Below, piece by piece: positions 2,494 to 40,222 of a stretch of DNA of 40,900 bases. The notes under the pieces are model-generated. The model searched no databases, was not told the origin of the DNA, and saw only the letters and a program-made list of their open reading frames with translations. The stretch is from the sequence record NC_003214.2. One strand, given 5' to 3'. Every line of letters begins with the position of its first letter. The first letter of the stretch is position 1. The position numbers were made by a program, and so were the translations under genes.

Positions 2494-4286
2494 TTGCATA
2501 ACACCTTTACCATTTTTTCTCCTATTATCTTTTTGCTTATTTCTTTTTGTGAACATAACTCTGTTTTGTTGTGTATACCATTTCTCATTAGTTCTATAGC
2601 ACGTTTCCGACCGATTCCAGGCAGTTGAACGAGAGCTAATGCTGATGCTGGTACGCCATATCTAATTTCTAAGAATAATAGTCTTAGTTTGTCAGCTAAT
2701 TCCTTTTTCCCTAACGCTTTCGTGATTCTATAAACGCCGTAGGTTTGCCATGACAAAGTCTGAACCAGTTTATTCAAGTCGTTGAGTGTCATGTTTTTTG
2801 TTGCCTTTACTATTGTTTTCTCATCAACTCCTTTTATCCATGAGTTGAAAATTATGTTGACGTTTTCGCCTTTTGATGCGTTTAGCACATTTTCGTTTTC
2901 TAGGATTGCGTTTATTATTTCCTCTTCTTTCACATTGTTTTTCGTTAAAACATCGTGGTATGTAATAGCGTCTTTAACGTCAAAGTATGACTCGGCAACG
3001 GCACGTCCGTATAATGTGACAAAATATCCTGTACCATCTTCACCAATTAGTTTTGCGTTTTTTAGTTCCTCTAACTTTTCTTTAACTAGCTCTTCACTTA
3101 TGTTTCTGAATGATATCGTGTGTTTCGTTGCTTCCATTATCCTATCAGGTTTTGCGTAGATGTACTTAGAAATTAACGCAAGGAGGAAGTCTTCAAGGAC
3201 GTGGTGTCCTGTTATTGTTCCGTAGCTCGTATTGAAATAGGTTCTTTTTAGTTTCTCGGCTTGTCTAATGTCAGTTGCTTCTATTATGCATAAACCTTCT
3301 TCGTCGTACCCAGGACGTCCAGCTCTTCCACAGATCTGATCAAACTCTATCGGCGTAATTTGTTTCCATCCTGTGAATCTTCCGTATTCTATGATCGGTA
3401 GTTTTAAGTCATCGAATACTACAGCGTAAAATGGGAAGTTAACACCCTGTGATAGTGCAGTTGTTGACACGATTATGTTATACTTACCTTGGCGTGTTTC
3501 CTCTAATAACCTTAGTTTTGTCTCTGCGTCTAGTCCTGCGTGAAAGAACGCTACTTTGTTTTGAAATTTCCTATCGTATATCATGTATAATTCTTCTGCT
3601 TTTTTTCTAGTTGATGTGAAAATCATCACTACTTTGTTCTTTCTTACCATTTTTTTGATAAAGTCCTCTTTTAGTTCTATTACGTCACCGTCTTCGAAAT
3701 ATAGCTTGTTTCCTATTTTTACTGCTTTGTACAAAGGTATCGGTCTCTCGTCTGTTTTTATTATTTCTGCGTCTATTATTTCTGCTATCTTATTAACATC
3801 TGGTATTGTTGCACTCATTGCCACTATTCTTATCCCTTCATTCATTGCGTATGCTATCAAGTTTTCAATGGCTTTTCCTCTTTCCTTATCACCGATATTA
3901 TGGATCTCATCGATAATTAGCGTTTCTATTCTATCAGTCCATGGATAATGTCTTCTAAATATAGCGTCTGCTTTCTCGTAAGTAGTAAAGATTACTCTCT
4001 CTTCCAAGTTCTCTGGATCTTCTTCATATACTTCTGATGTCAATGCCACGCTATCAGCGTATCCATTAACAAGTGGTGCCACTTTATTGTGGAAATCATC
4101 GTTTAGCTGTAGTGCTAGGGCTCGTAATGGTACCGTGTACACCACTCTACTTTTTGTCTCCATAGCCATTAGCATTGCTAGAAATGATTTACCTGTGCCC
4201 GTTGGTGCTGTGATTAACAGATTCTTGTCACTCATTAGGAATGACTGTAATGCTTTCTTTTGAAACTCATTTAGTTGTATCGACAT
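2490..4286 (-). CDS. SF2 Ski2/Hel308-like helicase with C-terminal HhH (598 aa)
   Basis: [46 protein letters not shown]; SD GGTGGTGA precedes ATG 4286. Confidence 0.95.
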
Positions 4287-4568: not shown

Positions 4569-4778
4569 ATGGAAGTTATTTTGGAAATTCCTAACGTTCT
4601 TCATGAAGAGAAACACTGTGAAGATTTTCTTGATTGCGTTGAAATATACATGAAGTATCTGACGAAATACGGTAAACAATTAGGTATCTGTTATGGGCAA
4701 AACTCTTTAAAGAAGTTCCCTATTTCTGGAGAGTTTAGAAATGAGTGTGAAAACGGTTACGTAGAAATAGTAAAATAA
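4569..4778 (+). CDS. Hypothetical protein (69 aa, 4 Cys)
   Basis: Isolated + strand ORF filling the gap between two minus-strand genes, with T-tract boundaries. Confidence 0.7.
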   Translation: MEVILEIPNVLHEEKHCEDFLDCVEIYMKYLTKYGKQLGICYGQNSLKKFPISGEFRNECENGYVEIVK

Positions 4779-4784
4779 AAAAAA

Positions 4785-5138
4785 TTATTCAAGTAATATT
4801 TTCTTTTTTCTGCTTGTTTCTGTATTTGTTTCGAATTTCTCTACATATTTGAATAATTTCTCATATTTTTCTACTATTTTCAGCATTGCTTTGATGTCTT
4901 CTAACGCATTCGCAGGGAACGACACGCTGTTGGTTGGCTTTTGTCCATGTATTGAAATTAATACGTTAACGTTGTTCTTATCGTCTTTGTATGCTATAAA
5001 ACCTAGTGATAGTTGTTCGCCCTCGTACACGTCAAATCTGCTAAATCTTTTTTGTGATTTCGTGAATTCTTCTACCCATTTATCAATTTCGGTTTTTAGC
5101 TCATCTGTTCTGTCTTGTTTCACTTCTTGTTTTGTCAT
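4785..5138 (-). CDS. Probable ssDNA-binding protein, rudivirus gp17/ORF131-like (117 aa)
   Basis: VLISIHGQ...ALEDIKAMLKIVEKYEKLFKYVEKF resembles my recollection of the SIRV2 gp17 core (SMTIHSQ...AEDLKLIAEFLEKYSDFLNEYVKF); context next to helicase and Cas4. Confidence 0.6.
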   Translation of the reverse strand: MTKQEVKQDRTDELKTEIDKWVEEFTKSQKRFSRFDVYEGEQLSLGFIAYKDDKNNVNVLISIHGQKPTNSVSFPANALEDIKAMLKIVEKYEKLFKYVEKFETNTETSRKKKILLE

Positions 5139-5144
5139 TTATTT

Positions 5145-5711
5145 TTACCCCTTTTTCGTCTTTGACAGTGCTTCATATTGCGTCTTTAATTCTTCAAGTC
5201 GTGAAGGGTGTACTAGTGTTACCATTGGCTGGGGATAGTCTGATTGTTGTAGTGCTATACCTACTATCACTGCTCCATTCTTTAATTTCGGTACAACAGA
5301 CCTTAGCAAACTATAATAAACTCCTTGAGATGTTGAGAACAAGTACACCTCTTTTTTATGGTTATTTACCTCCTTTAGTAGATTAATTGGAATTGTTTGA
5401 TTGTTTACAATTTCTTTTATTAGTCTTTGTTCTAATTCGTTGTTATCTATTACATATCCGTCGATATAGCTTACTTGTGCTGGTTCATTACTGTTCTTTA
5501 GTATTACATCTCTTATTTCTACTTTCTTGATTATCAGCAGACGCCACAAATAGTTCTTTAGATTTTCCCTTTGAAATGGTAGTACAAACTCGTCGGATTT
5601 GGCTTCTTCAACCATCTCTATTTTTTGTGTTTCTGTGTTTGCTATTTCAACATTTTCTTCAGGTTCTTCTTGTTTTAACTCCTCTTTTATTTTATCTTTT
5701 GAACTTACCAT
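5145..5711 (-). CDS. Hypothetical protein (188 aa), acidic N-terminus, beta-rich core
   Basis: GGAGG SD; operon packing. Confidence 0.88.
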   Translation of the reverse strand: MVSSKDKIKEELKQEEPEENVEIANTETQKIEMVEEAKSDEFVLPFQRENLKNYLWRLLIIKKVEIRDVILKNSNEPAQVSYIDGYVIDNNELEQRLIKEIVNNQTIPINLLKEVNNHKKEVYLFSTSQGVYYSLLRSVVPKLKNGAVIVGIALQQSDYPQPMVTLVHPSRLEELKTQYEALSKTKKG

Positions 5712-5854
5712 TGTTTAATCGCCTCCTTGATTTCTTCAGGATATGAGTCATACAATTCGCAAAATTCTAAAAAAATTCTCTCACTTTGACTTAACGCCTC
5801 AAGGGGTAACCCTTGAGGGTTTATTATTTTTTGACATTCACCAAACGCGGGCAT
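5705..5854 (-). CDS. Small ORF (49 aa) MPAFGECQKIINPQGLPLEALSQSERIFLEFCELYDSYPEEIKEAIKQW, below the track cutoff
   Basis: Translated by hand; its stop overlaps the start of 5145-5711; lies below the promoter at 5885-5900. Confidence 0.65.
   Translation of the reverse strand: MPAFGECQKIINPQGLPLEALSQSERIFLEFCELYDSYPEEIKEAIKQW
5797..5818. other. Perfect GC-rich hairpin CCTCAAGGG-gtaa-CCCTTGAGG
   Basis: 9-bp perfect arms, 4-nt loop, followed by a T-rich tract on the + strand. Confidence 0.8.
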
Positions 5855-5884
5855 TTTTGTTCTATCATAAATTGTAGCACAATT

Positions 5885-5900
5885 GATATTTAAATTTTTC
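5885..5900 (-). promoter_or_regulatory. Early-type promoter (BRE-TATA) GAAAAATTTAAATATC
   Basis: Motif repeated upstream of nearly every gene in 5.9-9.5 kb. Confidence 0.85.
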
Positions 5901-5980
5901 TGTATGCGTTAGTTGTCTTCAGTAATGAGTTTCATGAGAAGAAAATTAAAAAAAAATACTGATAAAAAAAGGAAAGTAAA

Positions 5981-6133
5981 TTATTTTTCTCTTCTCTGTA
6001 GATATTCTTCTAGTGCTTCACGTATTACATCTTGTATTTTTTTATCATTTTGTGCACAATAAATTTTTAGTCTTGTTTTTAAGCTTTTCGGGATTGTAAT
6101 TCCAAATGATACTTTTTCTTCTTGTTCTGTCAT
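5981..6133 (-). CDS. Ribbon-helix-helix (CopG-like) regulator, 50 aa, not in the ORF track
   Basis: MTEQEEKVSFGITIPKSLKTRLKIYCAQNDKKIQDVIREALEEYLQRREK; AGGTGA SD; own promoter at 6165-6182. Confidence 0.9.
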   Translation of the reverse strand: MTEQEEKVSFGITIPKSLKTRLKIYCAQNDKKIQDVIREALEEYLQRREK

Positions 6134-6164
6134 TTTTTCACCTAAATATAATTTAGAATTAGCG

Positions 6165-6182
6165 GATATTTAAAACTTTTTC
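6165..6182 (-). promoter_or_regulatory. Early-type promoter GAAAAAGTTTTAAATATC
   Basis: Repeated motif ~32 nt upstream of ATG 6133. Confidence 0.8.
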
Positions 6183-6222
6183 TGAAAAGAAGTTTAGAAG
6201 AAAGGAGGATAAAAAAAGAGAT

Positions 6223-6561
6223 TCACTTTTTCTTTTCTCTCCATCCTTGAACTTCATAAATATATATTTTGTTGTCTTCTTTCCTATAAGTGAACTCTAG
6301 TTTGTACATGATATCATCGTCTTCATCGTATGTATATTGGTCTATTGTTATTCCATTACTAGATACACTGTTACTTGAATCATAGTTTCCGAGCAATTCC
6401 CTATATTCTTCTTCTGTCACCTTAAGTGGATCTTTGAATTTTATTTTGAACTCACTTACTTTTTCCATAAATAAGAAATCCAAGGCATCATCTAGATCAT
6501 CTGCTTCTGTCCAATCGTTTATTATATCTGATTCAATTTTTTCTAAATCTTGTTTTTCCAT
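6223..6561 (-). CDS. acrID1: DUF1374 / AcrID1-family anti-CRISPR protein (112 aa; SIFV ORF14-like)
   Basis: Very acidic; SEFKIKFKDPLKVTEEEYRELL and YKLEFTYRKEDNKIYIYEVQGWREK match the recalled AcrID1 pattern. Activity of this particular homolog is not shown. Confidence 0.75.
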   Translation of the reverse strand: MEKQDLEKIESDIINDWTEADDLDDALDFLFMEKVSEFKIKFKDPLKVTEEEYRELLGNYDSSNSVSSNGITIDQYTYDEDDDIMYKLEFTYRKEDNKIYIYEVQGWREKKK

Positions 6562-6594
6562 TTTAATTTCCCTAACATAATGTTCTTCTACTCT

Positions 6595-6612
6595 ATTATT
6601 TAAATCTTTTTC
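6595..6612 (-). promoter_or_regulatory. Early-type promoter GAAAAAGATTTAAATAAT
   Basis: Repeated motif upstream of 6561. Confidence 0.8.
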
Positions 6613-6652
6613 TTGATTTCTAGATTCTTAGATATAAGAGCAGAAGTTCATC

Positions 6653-6666
6653 GGAAAATTTAAATA
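6653..6666 (+). promoter_or_regulatory. Early-type promoter GGAAAATTTAAATA
   Basis: Repeated motif upstream of 6697. Confidence 0.8.
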
Positions 6667-6696
6667 TATGTTTTACGTATGTAGTAATGATCAAAA

Positions 6697-6996
6697 ATGG
6701 TTGATGTGGAAACAGTCGAGACAAAATATAAGATCATTTTGGATACACAAAGTAATTATGTATTAATGGAAGGGAGGCTGAAGGTAGAGGTGCGGATTAA
6801 AGGAAAACCTATAATATATGAGGTTCAGGAAGTGAGAAATATGGGGTATCTAATCGATATCACTGAACTTGATATTGCAGATACAAAACAACGTATTGAT
6901 AGTAAACTTTGTGAGAGACGTTATAAATATGTTAATAGCTTAAAAAATTTAGAAAAATTTATTAATTTTGTAGGAGCAGAAATAGAAGTTAAGTAA
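6697..6996 (+). CDS. MV(E/D)V...IEV family paralog 1 (99 aa)
   Basis: Aligns with 8273-8584 and 9149-9436; own promoter and T-tract terminator. Confidence 0.9.
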   Translation: MVDVETVETKYKIILDTQSNYVLMEGRLKVEVRIKGKPIIYEVQEVRNMGYLIDITELDIADTKQRIDSKLCERRYKYVNSLKNLEKFINFVGAEIEVK

Positions 6997-7120
6997 TTCA
7001 ATTTATTTTTTTTATGTTTTTCTATTTCTTATTTTTCTCATTTTCGTTATGATGTTTCTTTCTTTAAAATAGTTTCGTTGACTTTTTTAATATCGAGAAA
7101 TCGAGACAAAGAAGTATATC

Positions 7121-7134
7121 GAAAAATTTAAATA
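7121..7134 (+). promoter_or_regulatory. Early-type promoter GAAAAATTTAAATA
   Basis: Repeated motif; ATG 7158 lies 24 nt after the TATA. Confidence 0.85.
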
Positions 7135-7157
7135 CCCGTTTTATGTATATATTCTTG

Positions 7158-7895
7158 ATGTATGGGTTAGAAGTTAAACAACTCAAATTACTTTATAATT
7201 TACCTAAAGTTTTTTTAACACCAAATCTAAATAAATTTTCTATCACAAGAAATTATGTGGATTGTGCCTATTATGAGTCAAGAAGTGGGCTAACTAGAGA
7301 GGGCTGTATTATATTCGATGGTAATGTTCACAGAACACGTGGAATATATTATATTCCTGTACCGTCTGCTGTGGAACTATCATATAGAAGGAAAATGATA
7401 AAGGATGAACAAGATGTCAAGCAGATAATAGAGAAAATTAATCTTTATGGTGCTACTCTAAATACTAATAAGTTGTTAGTAAAGTGGAATAATTATGAAA
7501 TAATTCTATATGATCGGTTCATTAAAGGAGGAATGTATGAGTTTCCTTTACTGTTTAGTCAAGGACATCTATATGTTTACAACATCCCTAGGGTGAGGGA
7601 GGCATATAGGATTATCTATGAAAACGATAACCAAAAGGAGGAAATTGATAGTGAGATGTTTGAAGAGATTAACGAATTTAGCGTATACAATCATGCTATC
7701 AAGTTTGATAAGAAAGTGCTGAAATTAAAAGAATTGTATGTTTCACCTGGTCAAGGAGTAGTCATATACACACTAGATGACGTTACACTTGTTTCAGAGT
7801 CACCAGACCATAATAAAATTGAGAAATTTGTGTATAAGAATTCGTGGATACTGTTTTCACATCGTGCCCCACGTAACCAAGATCAAAGAGATTAA
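7158..7895 (+). CDS. Hypothetical protein (245 aa; leaderless start 7158 preferred over 7143), C-terminal SPDH...LFSH motif
   Basis: Long ORF; ATG 7143 is too close to the TATA. Confidence 0.9.
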   Translation: MYGLEVKQLKLLYNLPKVFLTPNLNKFSITRNYVDCAYYESRSGLTREGCIIFDGNVHRTRGIYYIPVPSAVELSYRRKMIKDEQDVKQIIEKINLYGATLNTNKLLVKWNNYEIILYDRFIKGGMYEFPLLFSQGHLYVYNIPRVREAYRIIYENDNQKEEIDSEMFEEINEFSVYNHAIKFDKKVLKLKELYVSPGQGVVIYTLDDVTLVSESPDHNKIEKFVYKNSWILFSHRAPRNQDQRD

Positions 7896-7946
7896 CATTT
7901 TTTTATGATTCTTCTTAATCGAGAAAAATGTTTCTAGAGATTTGTC

Positions 7947-7960
7947 GAAAAATTTAAATA
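7947..7960 (+). promoter_or_regulatory. Early-type promoter GAAAAATTTAAATA
   Basis: Identical to 7121-7134; ATG 7981 lies 21 nt downstream. Confidence 0.85.
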
Positions 7961-7980
7961 TTTATTTTGCGTATTTTTAA

Positions 7981-8211
7981 ATGATAAACATGGGTGGGAA
8001 AACATTAATTATAAATTGGGAAAACCCGTTAAATAGAGATGCATACACGGAAATAGGAAAATTGATGGTGTTAGTTTTGCCGTATGTAGTTAATATTGAG
8101 ATTGTAGATACTGAAGGTTGTATAATGGAAATAGATGATACAATAGAAGATGAGATAAAGGAGTTAAGTAGATTCTTAAAGTATGTTGAAGTGTCTTTTG
8201 CAGAAGAATAA
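7981..8211 (+). CDS. Small acidic hypothetical protein (76 aa), anti-defence candidate
   Basis: Own early promoter; acidic. Confidence 0.85.
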   Translation: MINMGGKTLIINWENPLNRDAYTEIGKLMVLVLPYVVNIEIVDTEGCIMEIDDTIEDEIKELSRFLKYVEVSFAEE

Positions 8212-8272
8212 AAAATAAGCTATCCAATTTTTTTATAATATAAAAAGAGAAAAATAAAAAAAATAAATTAAC

Positions 8273-8584
8273 TTAGTTAACTTCTATTTCGGCACCTATC
8301 ATTTCCGCTATTTTTTCGAGTGTCTTTAACACATTCACGTATCTCTCAAATCTTTTATTTAGAGTTTCGTCAATATCTCCTTTAACATCTGTCACTTCAT
8401 TCTGTATCTCATTCTCTGTAATAGTTTGCATATTTCCCATAAATTTTTCTTGTTTGTCCCTGTATTTTATTTCACTCTCCTTAACAGTTATTATAGCTTC
8501 TATCGTTCCTTCAAGCGTTATACTATCGTCCCTTGTGTCGATAATCAATTTGTATTTTATTGTTTTTTGTTTCACTTCTACCAT
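8273..8584 (-). CDS. MV(E/D)V...IEV family paralog 2 (103 aa)
   Basis: KYKLIIDT...LEG...RYVNVLKTLEKI...GAEIEV shared with 6697-6996. Confidence 0.9.
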   Translation of the reverse strand: MVEVKQKTIKYKLIIDTRDDSITLEGTIEAIITVKESEIKYRDKQEKFMGNMQTITENEIQNEVTDVKGDIDETLNKRFERYVNVLKTLEKIAEMIGAEIEVN

Positions 8585-8612
8585 GTTTGGTCGATTGTAT
8601 ATTAGATAAAGA

Positions 8613-8628
8613 GATATTTAAAATTTTC
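8613..8628 (-). promoter_or_regulatory. Early-type promoter GAAAATTTTAAATATC
   Basis: Repeated motif upstream of 8584. Confidence 0.85.
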
Positions 8629-8727
8629 TGTGTCTTTCTCCTTATCGATTTTTCGTCCTAAAAATTCCATACGATAAAAATATTATCAGAAACATGAGAA
8701 CAATTAGAAATAAAAAAAAGGAGAAAA

Positions 8728-9012
8728 TTATTTTTCATAATTAGAATATATAAGATTTATAAGGGGTGATATCTCTTTTTCATGTTTTTTTAGTATGTCT
8801 AGGACATACCATTGATCATTATAGTCTTCAGGTTTTGCTATTATAAACAATTTTACTAATTTTTCCATAAATTGAATCCCTTTTATATGTCCAAATCTTT
8901 CATACCACCACTGTATGAATTCAACATTTTCTGTAGACATATAAAAAAATTTATCATTAATTTTAACATATTTTTCCCCAAATTCTATCTGTTCATTTAT
9001 CTGTTCATTCAT
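8728..9012 (-). CDS. Hypothetical protein (94 aa), anti-defence candidate
   Basis: Own promoter; GGGGA SD. Confidence 0.85.
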   Translation of the reverse strand: MNEQINEQIEFGEKYVKINDKFFYMSTENVEFIQWWYERFGHIKGIQFMEKLVKLFIIAKPEDYNDQWYVLDILKKHEKEISPLINLIYSNYEK

Positions 9013-9044
9013 ACTTCTATCCCCTAATTATCATTAGAAAAATA

Positions 9045-9060
9045 GATATTTAAAGATTTC
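9045..9060 (-). promoter_or_regulatory. Early-type promoter GAAATCTTTAAATATC
   Basis: 24-bp identity 9042-9065 = 9462-9485. Confidence 0.85.
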
Positions 9061-9148
9061 TCTATTTTTTGATTCATGAAAAAATGGATAACTTTCCAGA
9101 TAATATCCAAAACTTGAAAAAAATTACGAATAAAAAAAAGAAATTGGC

Positions 9149-9436
9149 TTAATCAACTTCTATTGTTAATCCTGATTTTTCTAATTCATTCAGACCTTCT
9201 TTTATTTCGTCAATTCTTTTGTCTAGTTCTTCAACAATTCTATTTATCATGTTTTTTACCTGGTCTGTTTTTATTGTTTCCACGAATCCTATTTCTTTTA
9301 TTGATGAAACAGCGTATGGCATTTCACTGTCTTTTACGTTAAAGATTACTTTTGTTTCACAGTCAAGACTTACAATACCATTTACGGAATTTATTTTTAT
9401 CTTGCATTCGATTTGTTTCTTTACTACTTCAACCAT
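9149..9436 (-). CDS. MV(E/D)V...IEV family paralog 3 (95 aa)
   Basis: Same N-terminus, beta-strand pattern, C-terminal helix and terminal IEV as the other two. Confidence 0.88.
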   Translation of the reverse strand: MVEVVKKQIECKIKINSVNGIVSLDCETKVIFNVKDSEMPYAVSSIKEIGFVETIKTDQVKNMINRIVEELDKRIDEIKEGLNELEKSGLTIEVD

Positions 9437-9464
9437 TTTTGGTCATTAATACATTAGACACATA

Positions 9465-9480
9465 GATATTTAAAGATTTC
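9465..9480 (-). promoter_or_regulatory. Early-type promoter GAAATCTTTAAATATC
   Basis: Duplicate of 9045-9060. Confidence 0.85.
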
Positions 9481-10014
9481 TCTATCTTTCTTTTTATCGA
9501 ATTTTCGTTTTCAATTATGTGGAAGGAGTTGGAATATTATTTCAAAATCGAAAACAAGTTTGAGTACTAATTTATCTACTTTTTTTTCTGTATTTTGAGA
9601 GATATAAATTCAATCCCGGCTGCAGAACAATTTTTGTATCTTATTGTATTTTTATCTGTTTTTTTGTTTGAATACTAATTTGTTCACTTAATTTAAGGAA
9701 ACAAAAAAGAATTCAAACAAAAAATCTATTGTTTCAAATATTATTTTAATGACTTTATAATTTATACGTAAAAATAATCAGAGTGTAACGTAATGAATTG
9801 GATAAATTTCTTTTAAAAGAGTTTTCTGATTTGGGCTAACCCAAACGATTAAAGTTTTTTCTTTAAAAATGATTTTACGCCGTTATTTTCCCTAATTTTA
9901 AGGAGAGTTAAGGGCAAAAGTGGAAAATTTTAGGTTTAAAAACTTTTCTAGTAAAATAACGAGTGTGGTTAAAAAAGATTTTTGTATCCAGAGTGAAACT
10001 AATACTATCTTCTT

Positions 10015-10218: not shown

Positions 10219-10297
10219 TTAAAGCAAAATTCTCGATATTACCTTATATGGTGTAATATTATCCAAAACTTGAGAAATATAGTGAATAAAAATAAGT

Positions 10298-38875: not shown

Positions 38876-39172
38876 ATGAGATTATTTTCATTTAAGGGAA
38901 GAAGAAAAAAGAAATCCCTATTCGTACAATCTGAAGCAGAAATACCAATAAAAATAATGGTAGCAATAGGAAAAAGGCATGCAGTAGGAATAGCAGAACT
39001 AGGAGATCAATCGGCAACAGTAGAAAAGACATTTCTACCGTTCTTCAAACCTCCAGAACCAGAAGAAATAGCGAAAATGTTATTGAGCAAATTAGGAATA
39101 CCAGAAAACGAATGGGAGGAAATACTAAAAAATAAAACAGAATTACAAACTAACGAAACATTTTGGCGTTGA
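38876..39172 (+). CDS. Hypothetical protein (98 aa), basic N-terminus
   Basis: Consistent A-ending codon usage; divergent from the minus-strand operon. Confidence 0.75.
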   Translation: MRLFSFKGRRKKKSLFVQSEAEIPIKIMVAIGKRHAVGIAELGDQSATVEKTFLPFFKPPEPEEIAKMLLSKLGIPENEWEEILKNKTELQTNETFWR

Positions 39173-39479
39173 AATATACTCCAAGAGAAATATAGGAAAG
39201 AAGATAAGCCAAAGTAAGATAAAAGTATTTATACAGAGAAAGAGTGTAAAATATAAAAAAAGGAACTGGTAATGAGATAATATTGATGAACAAGATAACA
39301 GAAATGTCATGATATTCACGAAAATAAACGTAATCTTCATAAAAAATCCAAATAGGAAAAAGAAAAAGTGTAAAATAGTCAACGTAAACATTACAATGGG
39401 CTTTTAAAACAAGAAAATAGATCCATCCATAAAGCAAATATAAAGCCATGGCGAACCTCAAAGGGTGATGGATAATCAT
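39150..39479 (-). CDS. Hydrophobic membrane protein (109 aa)
   Basis: ATGA coupling to the 39476-39658 stop; F/Y/L/I-rich. Confidence 0.65.
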   Translation of the reverse strand: MIIHHPLRFAMALYLLYGWIYFLVLKAHCNVYVDYFTLFLFPIWIFYEDYVYFREYHDISVILFINIISLPVPFFIFYTLSLYKYFYLTLAYLLSYISLGVYFNAKMFR

Positions 39480-39658
39480 TTCTCACTGCCCTTTCCAGCT
39501 TGGTAACCGGAATGAAATACAATTGCAGTAAAAAAACCAATAAGTATATAGACCCAGTATTGGTCATTAAGTAGTGATGGATTAACAAAAGTAAGAAAAA
39601 TCATAAATGTAAATATGACAGAATTAATAAGATACATTATAACAGAAAAGTAATTCAT
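39476..39658 (-). CDS. Small two-TM membrane protein (60 aa)
   Basis: Two hydrophobic segments and a charged tail GKGSEK. Confidence 0.75.
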   Translation of the reverse strand: MNYFSVIMYLINSVIFTFMIFLTFVNPSLLNDQYWVYILIGFFTAIVFHSGYQAGKGSEK

Positions 39659-39685
39659 GATAAAAATAAGAGAAGAAAAGGGTAT

Positions 39686-40222
39686 TTAAATCTTTTTCGC
39701 GTATTTCACAAATCGAGTTATATATCGTCTAGGATACGCACAATCAAACTTCTTAAACTCGTTAAACATGGAAGTTACAACACGAAAATGTAGGACATCA
39801 TGAACAAAAAAATCAAGATAAGGATATGAAACAAGCTTAACTAAATTACTTTCTATAAGATACTTAGAACACTCTTTGACATGGATTTTGGATGCTTTTA
39901 TCGATGAAAGCGTAGGATAGACATATTGTTTAAAAAGATCAGAGTAAAGATTATAAAATATTTCAGCATGCTTAAAACATTTATTACCAGCACAAGAAAT
40001 ATCATAAGTTAGCAAATATTTATTAGAAAGTGGTTCTGGTACGTTATATTCGATGTAAATTAAACCGTTATTATAATCAATTTCGAAACTTGACTTACGC
40101 AATGTAATAAATAGATATAAGCCAAAAGAAGGACATAAAAATTTGAATCTATCAGGACTGAAATGAATATCAAAAATAGAAGAATGTATACCATGACGTA
40201 ATAAAGAAAGCAAACTGGGCAT
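39686..40222 (-). CDS. Hypothetical protein (178 aa)
   Basis: Long ORF; start uncertain. Confidence 0.75.
   Translation of the reverse strand: MPSLLSLLRHGIHSSIFDIHFSPDRFKFLCPSFGLYLFITLRKSSFEIDYNNGLIYIEYNVPEPLSNKYLLTYDISCAGNKCFKHAEIFYNLYSDLFKQYVYPTLSSIKASKIHVKECSKYLIESNLVKLVSYPYLDFFVHDVLHFRVVTSMFNEFKKFDCAYPRRYITRFVKYAKKI

Follow-up and report, generated by a model that had tools for sequence, protein, structure and literature searches.

The 40,900-bp window that we analysed is the complete genome of the lipothrixvirus SIFV (Sulfolobus islandicus filamentous virus; AF440571.2/NC_003214.2), and our subject is an island of small genes near one of its ends, SIFV0012 to SIFV0020, that lie in both orientations under nine copies of one promoter motif. 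The region 5800-9600 matches AF440571.2/NC_003214.2 at 100%, and the G+C content of the island is only 26-30%. The motif consists of an archaeal transcription factor B recognition element (BRE; GAAA..) and the TATA box TTTAAATA. The island and its promoter motif are already known from a 2024 publication: Bhoobalan-Chitty et al. (2024; Nat Commun, PMC11065993) took TTTAWATA preceded by a purine-rich BRE as the basis of their method, drew SIFV in their Figure 1D and listed SIFV0011-0020 in their Supplementary Data 1; both the discovery principle, that is, that a shared strong promoter marks anti-defence genes (ADGs), and the SIFV locus are therefore in the literature. Relative to that work, the new observations are that a tenth copy of the motif lies at 39683 and that the 5885 promoter heads an operon, together with statistics on the terminators, corrected start codons, and a mosaic of synonymous divergence (dS) between SIFV and SIFV2.

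Promoters, terminators and cassette layout

The preliminary description of this DNA placed nine copies of the motif between 5885 and 9480; all nine are present. Their exact spans are listed below with the units that they head, followed by the tenth copy from outside the island (Tn denotes a run of n thymines).

4777-5900, minus strand: promoter 1 and its operon; BRE/TATA 5887-5900; ORF49/SIFV0012 5705-5854, ORF188/SIFV0011 5145-5711 and ORF117 4785-5138; T8 end 4777-4784
5948-6182, minus strand: cassette 2; promoter GAAAAAGTTTTAAATA 6167-6182; ORF50/SIFV0013 5981-6133; T7 5964-5970 and T9 5948-5956
6211-6612, minus strand: cassette 3; promoter GAAAAAGATTTAAATA 6597-6612; ORF112/SIFV0014 6223-6561; T7 6211-6217
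6653-7013, plus strand: cassette 4; promoter GGAAAATTTAAATA 6653-6666; ORF99/SIFV0015 6697-6996; T8 7006-7013
7121-7904, plus strand: cassette 5; promoter GAAAAATTTAAATA 7121-7134; ORF245/SIFV0016, probable start 7158, stop 7895; T7 7898-7904
7947-8234, plus strand: cassette 6; promoter GAAAAATTTAAATA 7947-7960; ORF76/SIFV0017 7981 or 7990 to 8211; T7 8228-8234
8256-8628, minus strand: cassette 7; promoter GAAAATTTTAAATA 8615-8628; ORF103/SIFV0018 8273-8584; T8 8256-8263
8712-9060, minus strand: cassette 8; promoter GAAATCTTTAAATA 9047-9060; ORF94/SIFV0019 8728-9012; T8 8712-8719
9132-9480, minus strand: cassette 9; promoter GAAATCTTTAAATA 9467-9480; ORF95/SIFV0020 9149-9436; T8 9132-9139
39150-39698, minus strand: unit of the tenth copy; GAAAAAGATTTAAATA 39683-39698; SIFV0074 39476-39658 and the overlapping ORF109 39150-39479

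The pattern GAAA-N(2-4)-TTTAAATA matches nine times in the genome (0.19 expected), a count that none of 100 shuffles reaches; eight of these matches lie in the island and one outside it (39683-39698), and the ninth island copy (6653), with a 1-nt spacer, is caught by the pattern GAAAWNTTTAAATA instead. Exact TTTAAATA octamers number 16 in the genome, nine of them within the 3.6 kb from 5887 to 9474. Every island copy faces a same-strand ATG, located 20-35 nt beyond the TATA box. The preliminary description called the promoters near-identical, and this holds for the core of 14-16 nt but not for two variant copies or for the flanks. Seven of the nine island copies have G at -6 and A at -3 relative to the TATA start; the copies at ORF50 and ORF112, as well as the tenth copy, have the form GAAAAAG(T/A)TTTAAATA, in which the G is shifted by 2 nt. 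Outside the core, the flanking sequences sort into sub-groups that have conserved elements 3' of the TATA box: ~60 nt are common to the three plus-strand promoters (67-73% identity) and 31-38 nt to the minus-strand promoters of ORF49, ORF103, ORF94 and ORF95, and an upstream ATCGA-type element occurs in only about half of the promoters.

A T7-T9 run follows the stop codon by 3-17 nt in eight of the nine genes (the exception is ORF49), as the earlier report of T-tracts between genes in both orientations had suggested. The companion claim, one promoter per small gene, is borne out by eight cassettes and fails at the 5885 copy, which heads a three-gene operon because ORF49 overlaps ORF188 (by 7 nt), after which come ORF117 and then the T8 at 4777-4784. 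A scan for bacterial sigma-70 promoters and hairpin terminators (30 sites, 30 expected) is uninformative for an archaeal virus, and an Rfam search of the window gave no match.

Products of the island genes and of the tenth promoter

The preliminary description stated that one gene belongs to the AcrID1 family and did not name it; the gene is ORF112 (SIFV0014; labeled AcrID1 by Bhoobalan-Chitty et al., 2024), which matches DUF1374 (PF07118) at E=5.8e-36 and whose residues 2-112 are identical to PDB 2H36, the crystal structure of SIFV0014. The AcrID1 structure 6EXP matches at E=7e-4, and gp45 and gp46 of the rudivirus SIRV2, annotated as ‘AcrID1 family’, match the same Pfam family, with 37% identity between ORF112 and gp46. 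Many members of the DUF1374/AcrID1 family have no early promoter (Bhoobalan-Chitty et al., 2024). Homology of ORF112 to AcrIA3 (SIRV2 gp47) was considered and rejected (E=0.6).

By its sequence, ORF245 (SIFV0016; labeled AcrIIIB1 in the same work) is a homolog of AcrIIIB1(/AcrIA4): it shares 44% identity with SIRV2 gp48/ORF249 over 96% coverage (tblastn, E=5e-62). SIRV2 gp48 is AcrIIIB1; a preprint, in which it is also called AcrIA4, shows that it inhibits type I-A as well (10.1101/2024.04.02.587611). The annotated start at 7143 lies only 8 nt past the TATA box, too near to it, so 7158, which lies 23 nt past the TATA box and fits a leaderless transcript, is more likely to be the true start. 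The old label of SIFV0016, ‘ribonuclease T1-related’, has sub-threshold support (Pfam E=0.016, PDB E>=0.037) and is rejected in favor of the AcrIIIB1 homology.

ORF99, ORF103 and ORF95 (SIFV0015, SIFV0018 and SIFV0020; all labeled ADG.56 by Bhoobalan-Chitty et al., 2024) are paralogs that match phrog_18494 (ORF99 at E=1e-40). The SIFV2 ortholog of ORF103, at a syntenic position and 55-57% identical, is gp15, an inhibitor of type I-A CRISPR whose activity has been validated: it restored infectivity to an acrIA-deleted virus on a type I-A host (Bhoobalan-Chitty et al., 2024). ORF95 is the ortholog of SIFV2 gp17 (58% identical; ~35% to gp15), which was negative in a weak-promoter screen (Bhoobalan-Chitty et al., 2024). 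ORF99 has no counterpart in SIFV2 and is 39% identical to ORF103 and 33% to gp15. Over the 107 nt of promoter and 5' coding sequence, ORF95 and ORF103 are 75% identical. The family is small: a profile search over 1.84 billion representative proteins recovered only nine members, and word-indexed homolog searches with ORF103 recovered nothing beyond SIFV or SIFV2. The AlphaFold2 model of ORF103 (predicted local distance difference test score, pLDDT, 93.5) has three long beta-strands and then a 40-residue helix; compared with the PDB it gave no significant match, the best being at E=0.04 (weak COMM-domain, LptE and levivirus-coat-like similarities).

ORF76 and ORF94 (SIFV0017, labeled ADG.58, and SIFV0019, labeled ADG.57; Bhoobalan-Chitty et al., 2024) each have a sole relative, SIFV2 gp14 and SIFV2 gp16, respectively, and both pairs are 97% identical. 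Word-indexed searches found nothing for either protein beyond SIFV or SIFV2; ORF76 has no Pfam match above threshold, and for ORF94 no relative was found in genome contigs or IMG/VR. Relatives of ORF94 in host genomes were noted by Bhoobalan-Chitty et al. (2024); a pattern search of genome contigs recovered none of these. The low-confidence model of ORF94 (pLDDT 67) gave no fold match. For SIFV0017, the start at 7981 is perhaps too near the TATA box, and 7990 is more likely. The preliminary description had proposed six genes as candidate inhibitors of unknown host defences; the claim of unknown targets is wrong for four of these, which have assigned families, that is, ORF245 as an AcrIIIB1/AcrIA4 homolog, ORF103 as the gp15 ortholog, and ORF99 and ORF95 as paralogs of ORF103, and only ORF76 and ORF94 remain as orphans.

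Two of the nine promoters drive genes that are not inhibitors, a regulator (ORF50) and a conserved core operon (that of ORF49). ORF50 (SIFV0013; labeled ADG.59, SvtR/Arc-like, by Bhoobalan-Chitty et al., 2024) is a ribbon-helix-helix (RHH) protein of the SvtR/56B type, with matches to PF21432 (56B_RHH; E=1.3e-20) and to PDB 2KEL (SIRV1 56B/SvtR; E=9e-12) and the PHROG annotation ‘Arc-like repressor’. We rejected its placement in the aCcr1 cell-cycle RHH clade, in which SIFV is represented by SIFV0029.

The ORF49 operon carries several published labels: SIFV0012 is ADG.60, classed as ADG-associated (‘ADa’), SIFV0011 is pADG.03, and pADG.09 is also used for the operon; most ADGs in that study are individual genes with separate promoters (Bhoobalan-Chitty et al., 2024). 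ORF49 is 63-76% identical to its counterparts in other betalipothrixviruses (AFV3, 6, 7, 8 and 9), and the gene order ORF49-ORF188-ORF117 recurs in an 11.8-kb metagenomic betalipothrixvirus contig (L007). GenBank places SIFV0010 on the plus strand (4849-5238), opposite the minus-strand ORF117 (4785-5138); ORF117, not SIFV0010, is kept in SIFV2 (gp09), in L007 and in PHROGs (phrog_27070, E=1e-69). Within the SIFV0012 coding sequence we also observed a palindrome with a perfect 9-bp stem, CCTCAAGGG-GTAA-CCCTTGAGG, at 5797-5818.

The tenth motif copy overlaps the SIFV0075 stop codon at the opposite end of the genome from the island, and its motif is identical in SIFV2. It drives SIFV0074 and ORF109, small hydrophobic proteins with homologs in AFV9, AFV1 and SMRV1; the published SIFV ADGs do not include SIFV0074. 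SIFV0073, annotated on the plus strand, is probably a mis-call over ORF109.

Variation of the island among related viruses

The motif is also concentrated in related DNA. In SIFV2, six exact copies occur in the homologous 8.9 kb (0.12 expected), and a 1.7-kb metagenomic contig (L008) has four (0.14 expected), which precede an RHH gene and genes that resemble gp15 and AcrIIIB1 (the latter gene 44% identical to ORF245); the promoter of the RHH gene is the GAAAAAGTTTTAAATA variant, as in SIFV ORF50. In L007 only three small genes separate the helicase from the ORF49 operon, so the island occupies a variable slot at a conserved position.

Comparison of positions 7100-9600 of SIFV with the SIFV2 sequence (contig L002, 3470-5965) reveals a mosaic. 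Most of 7520-9570 is 97-100% identical at the nucleotide level: ORF76 and ORF94, their promoters and the C-terminal half of ORF245 are near-unchanged (dS 0.02-0.09), as are the terminators and most of the intergenic DNA (likewise 97-100%), and identity drops somewhat, to ~83%, in the promoter-proximal DNA of both ORF103 and ORF95. Against this background ORF103 (dS saturated), ORF95 (dS 1.5) and the N-terminal half of ORF245 (dS 0.96) have diverged to 45-75% nucleotide identity, that is, synonymous divergence differs 20-fold or more between adjacent genes. The breakpoints of the mosaic coincide with the T-tract terminators and with positions ~15-50 nt upstream of the BRE; in addition, an apparent recombination breakpoint lies within ORF245 near 7520. 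Because neighboring genes differ so strongly in synonymous divergence, the pattern points to replacement of cassettes or alleles by recombination rather than to selection in place.

The two genomes also differ by an insertion in SIFV of two cassettes (ORF112 and ORF99, ~6206-7080) between divergent promoters that are adjacent in SIFV2, and metagenomic relatives have different sets of cassettes at the same position. From the 20-fold contrasts in dS, the positions of the breakpoints, the clean two-cassette indel and the differing metagenomic sets, we tentatively suggest, at a little short of even confidence, that the conserved terminator and inter-cassette DNA serves both as regulatory signals and as portable homology arms, by which whole promoter-gene cassettes would be swapped, gained and lost between co-infecting lipothrixviruses, much like an integrase-free cassette array. 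As a separate observation on SIFV2, the annotated coding sequence of gp11 (L002 2906-3136) contains its own promoter, and a 49-aa form is more likely.

Function of the island and alternative explanations

We consider it very probable that the region is an anti-defence and early-regulatory island of SIFV. The central idea of the preliminary description, that promoters of the early BRE/TATA type mark an anti-defence island composed of cassettes with promoter, gene and terminator, agrees with what Bhoobalan-Chitty et al. (2024) reported on this genome; the genome, motif and genes are those of their early ADG regulon in Rudiviridae and Lipothrixviridae, with no essential difference. The activities of SIRV2 gp48, SIRV3 gp02 and SIFV2 gp15 are taken from the literature, as is the early expression of genes with this motif, which was shown for SIRV2 (Bhoobalan-Chitty et al., 2024); by analogy we infer early timing in SIFV (from SIRV2), the activities of the individual SIFV proteins and the role of ORF50. 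Each gene has its own near-optimal archaeal core promoter (a purine-rich BRE with -6 G and -3 A, followed by TTTAAATA), which would recruit the TATA-binding protein (TBP), transcription factor B (TFB) and RNA polymerase of the host. Each transcript would have a leader of 0-12 nt and stop at an oligo-T terminator, so the small proteins would be made independently, in large amounts and probably straight after infection. By analogy with their relatives, the expected binding partners are Cas10d, the large subunit of type I-D, for ORF112 and the Cmr complexes of type III-B for ORF245, which would also be expected to counter type I-A; ORF103, ORF99 and ORF95 are three paralogs of the type I-A inhibitor SIFV2 gp15, and the SvtR-like RHH repressor ORF50 would probably modulate or shut off the regulon. 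The island would be an example of an archaeal virus armed against several CRISPR types at once.

The terminal anti-CRISPR (Acr) clusters of SIRV2 (AcrID1 paralogs, gp47 AcrIA3, gp48 AcrIIIB1/AcrIA4 and Aca8) are, like the SIFV island, composed of small single-gene cassettes with strong early promoters, and both include members of the AcrID1 and AcrIIIB1 families. The two viruses differ in that SIFV has one island near one genome end and SIRV2 has a cluster at each end, and in the family that has multiplied (ADG.56 in SIFV, AcrID1 in SIRV2); also, unlike in SIRV2, no gene assigned to Aca8 was found in the SIFV island, where the candidate regulator is the SvtR-type RHH protein. Bacteriophage acr-aca operons likewise combine a strong early promoter, small inhibitor genes and a small DNA-binding protein encoded alongside; in contrast, the SIFV genes are monocistronic, each with an archaeal TBP/TFB promoter and an oligo-T terminator, and the RHH regulator has its own promoter.

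Several observations weigh against an anti-defence island. No SIFV transcriptome turned up in the literature search, and early timing is therefore no more than an extrapolation from SIRV2; in addition, no inverted repeat resembling a common operator was seen at the nine promoters, a further difference from acr-aca operons. As the tenth copy and the 5885 operon establish, the motif is not specific to anti-defence genes and marks strong promoters in general; the same BRE/TATA also occurs 5' of highly expressed host genes and of the type I-A cas operon (Bhoobalan-Chitty et al., 2024). In the initial screen of that study, SIFV2 gp14, gp16 and gp17 (the orthologs of ORF76, ORF94 and ORF95) as well as gp09 and gp10 had no effect against type I-A or type III-B Cmr-alpha. 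These results, together with the presence of the motif at the RHH regulator, at the ORF49 operon (its first gene kept in betalipothrixviruses, its order in L007) and at the membrane-protein operon of the other genome end, are also what would be expected if the motif marked a generic high-expression, possibly early regulon in which only some cassettes encode defence inhibitors, whereas ORF76, ORF94, the ORF49 operon and perhaps some of the paralogs function in takeover of the host, control of transcription or the set-up of replication. We regard such a generic regulon as possible but rather doubtful: for five or more of the nine cassettes the family includes an experimentally shown Acr member, and ORF76, ORF94 and the paralogs are limited to SIFV-like viruses, in which their presence is variable, as in accessory counter-defence genes.

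The resemblance among the promoters could also reflect recent tandem duplication of cassettes, with no selection for a shared regulatory sequence. The similarity among the ORF99, ORF103 and ORF95 paralogs does span promoter, 5' coding sequence, 3' coding sequence and terminator; however, the same core precedes ORF50, ORF112, ORF245, ORF76, ORF94 and ORF49, which are mutually non-homologous, it occurs in rudiviruses and metagenomic relatives, and the promoters are conserved between SIFV and SIFV2 where coding sequences are saturated with change, and we consider duplication very improbable as the explanation. Chance matches in AT-rich DNA have next to no probability and are already refuted: the island is poor in G+C, and TTTAAATA alone is not enriched genome-wide (16 occurrences, 12.4 expected), but when the BRE is included the excess is that given above (9 against 0.19), and nine of the ten copies fall in 3.6 kb, all correctly oriented 20-35 nt before an ATG.

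Two features of the DNA between genes were also observed. A 41-nt repeat (a terminator T-run and ~30 nt, ‘ATATTATCCAAAACTTGAGAAA...’) at 5932-5972, 8680-8720, 9100-9140 and 10256-10296 sits downstream of ORF50, ORF94 and ORF95 and also of the SIFV0022 helicase gene; it could serve either as a joint between cassettes or as an element upstream of the promoter that follows. Between ORF95 and SIFV0021, ~580 bp (9437-10014; G+C ~0.26) contain no annotated gene and gave no Rfam match. This stretch includes a near-palindrome with 32-nt arms (9660-9691 and 9693-9724), and parts of it recur in SIFV2 and, compared by eye, in contig L007 (~3900-4000).

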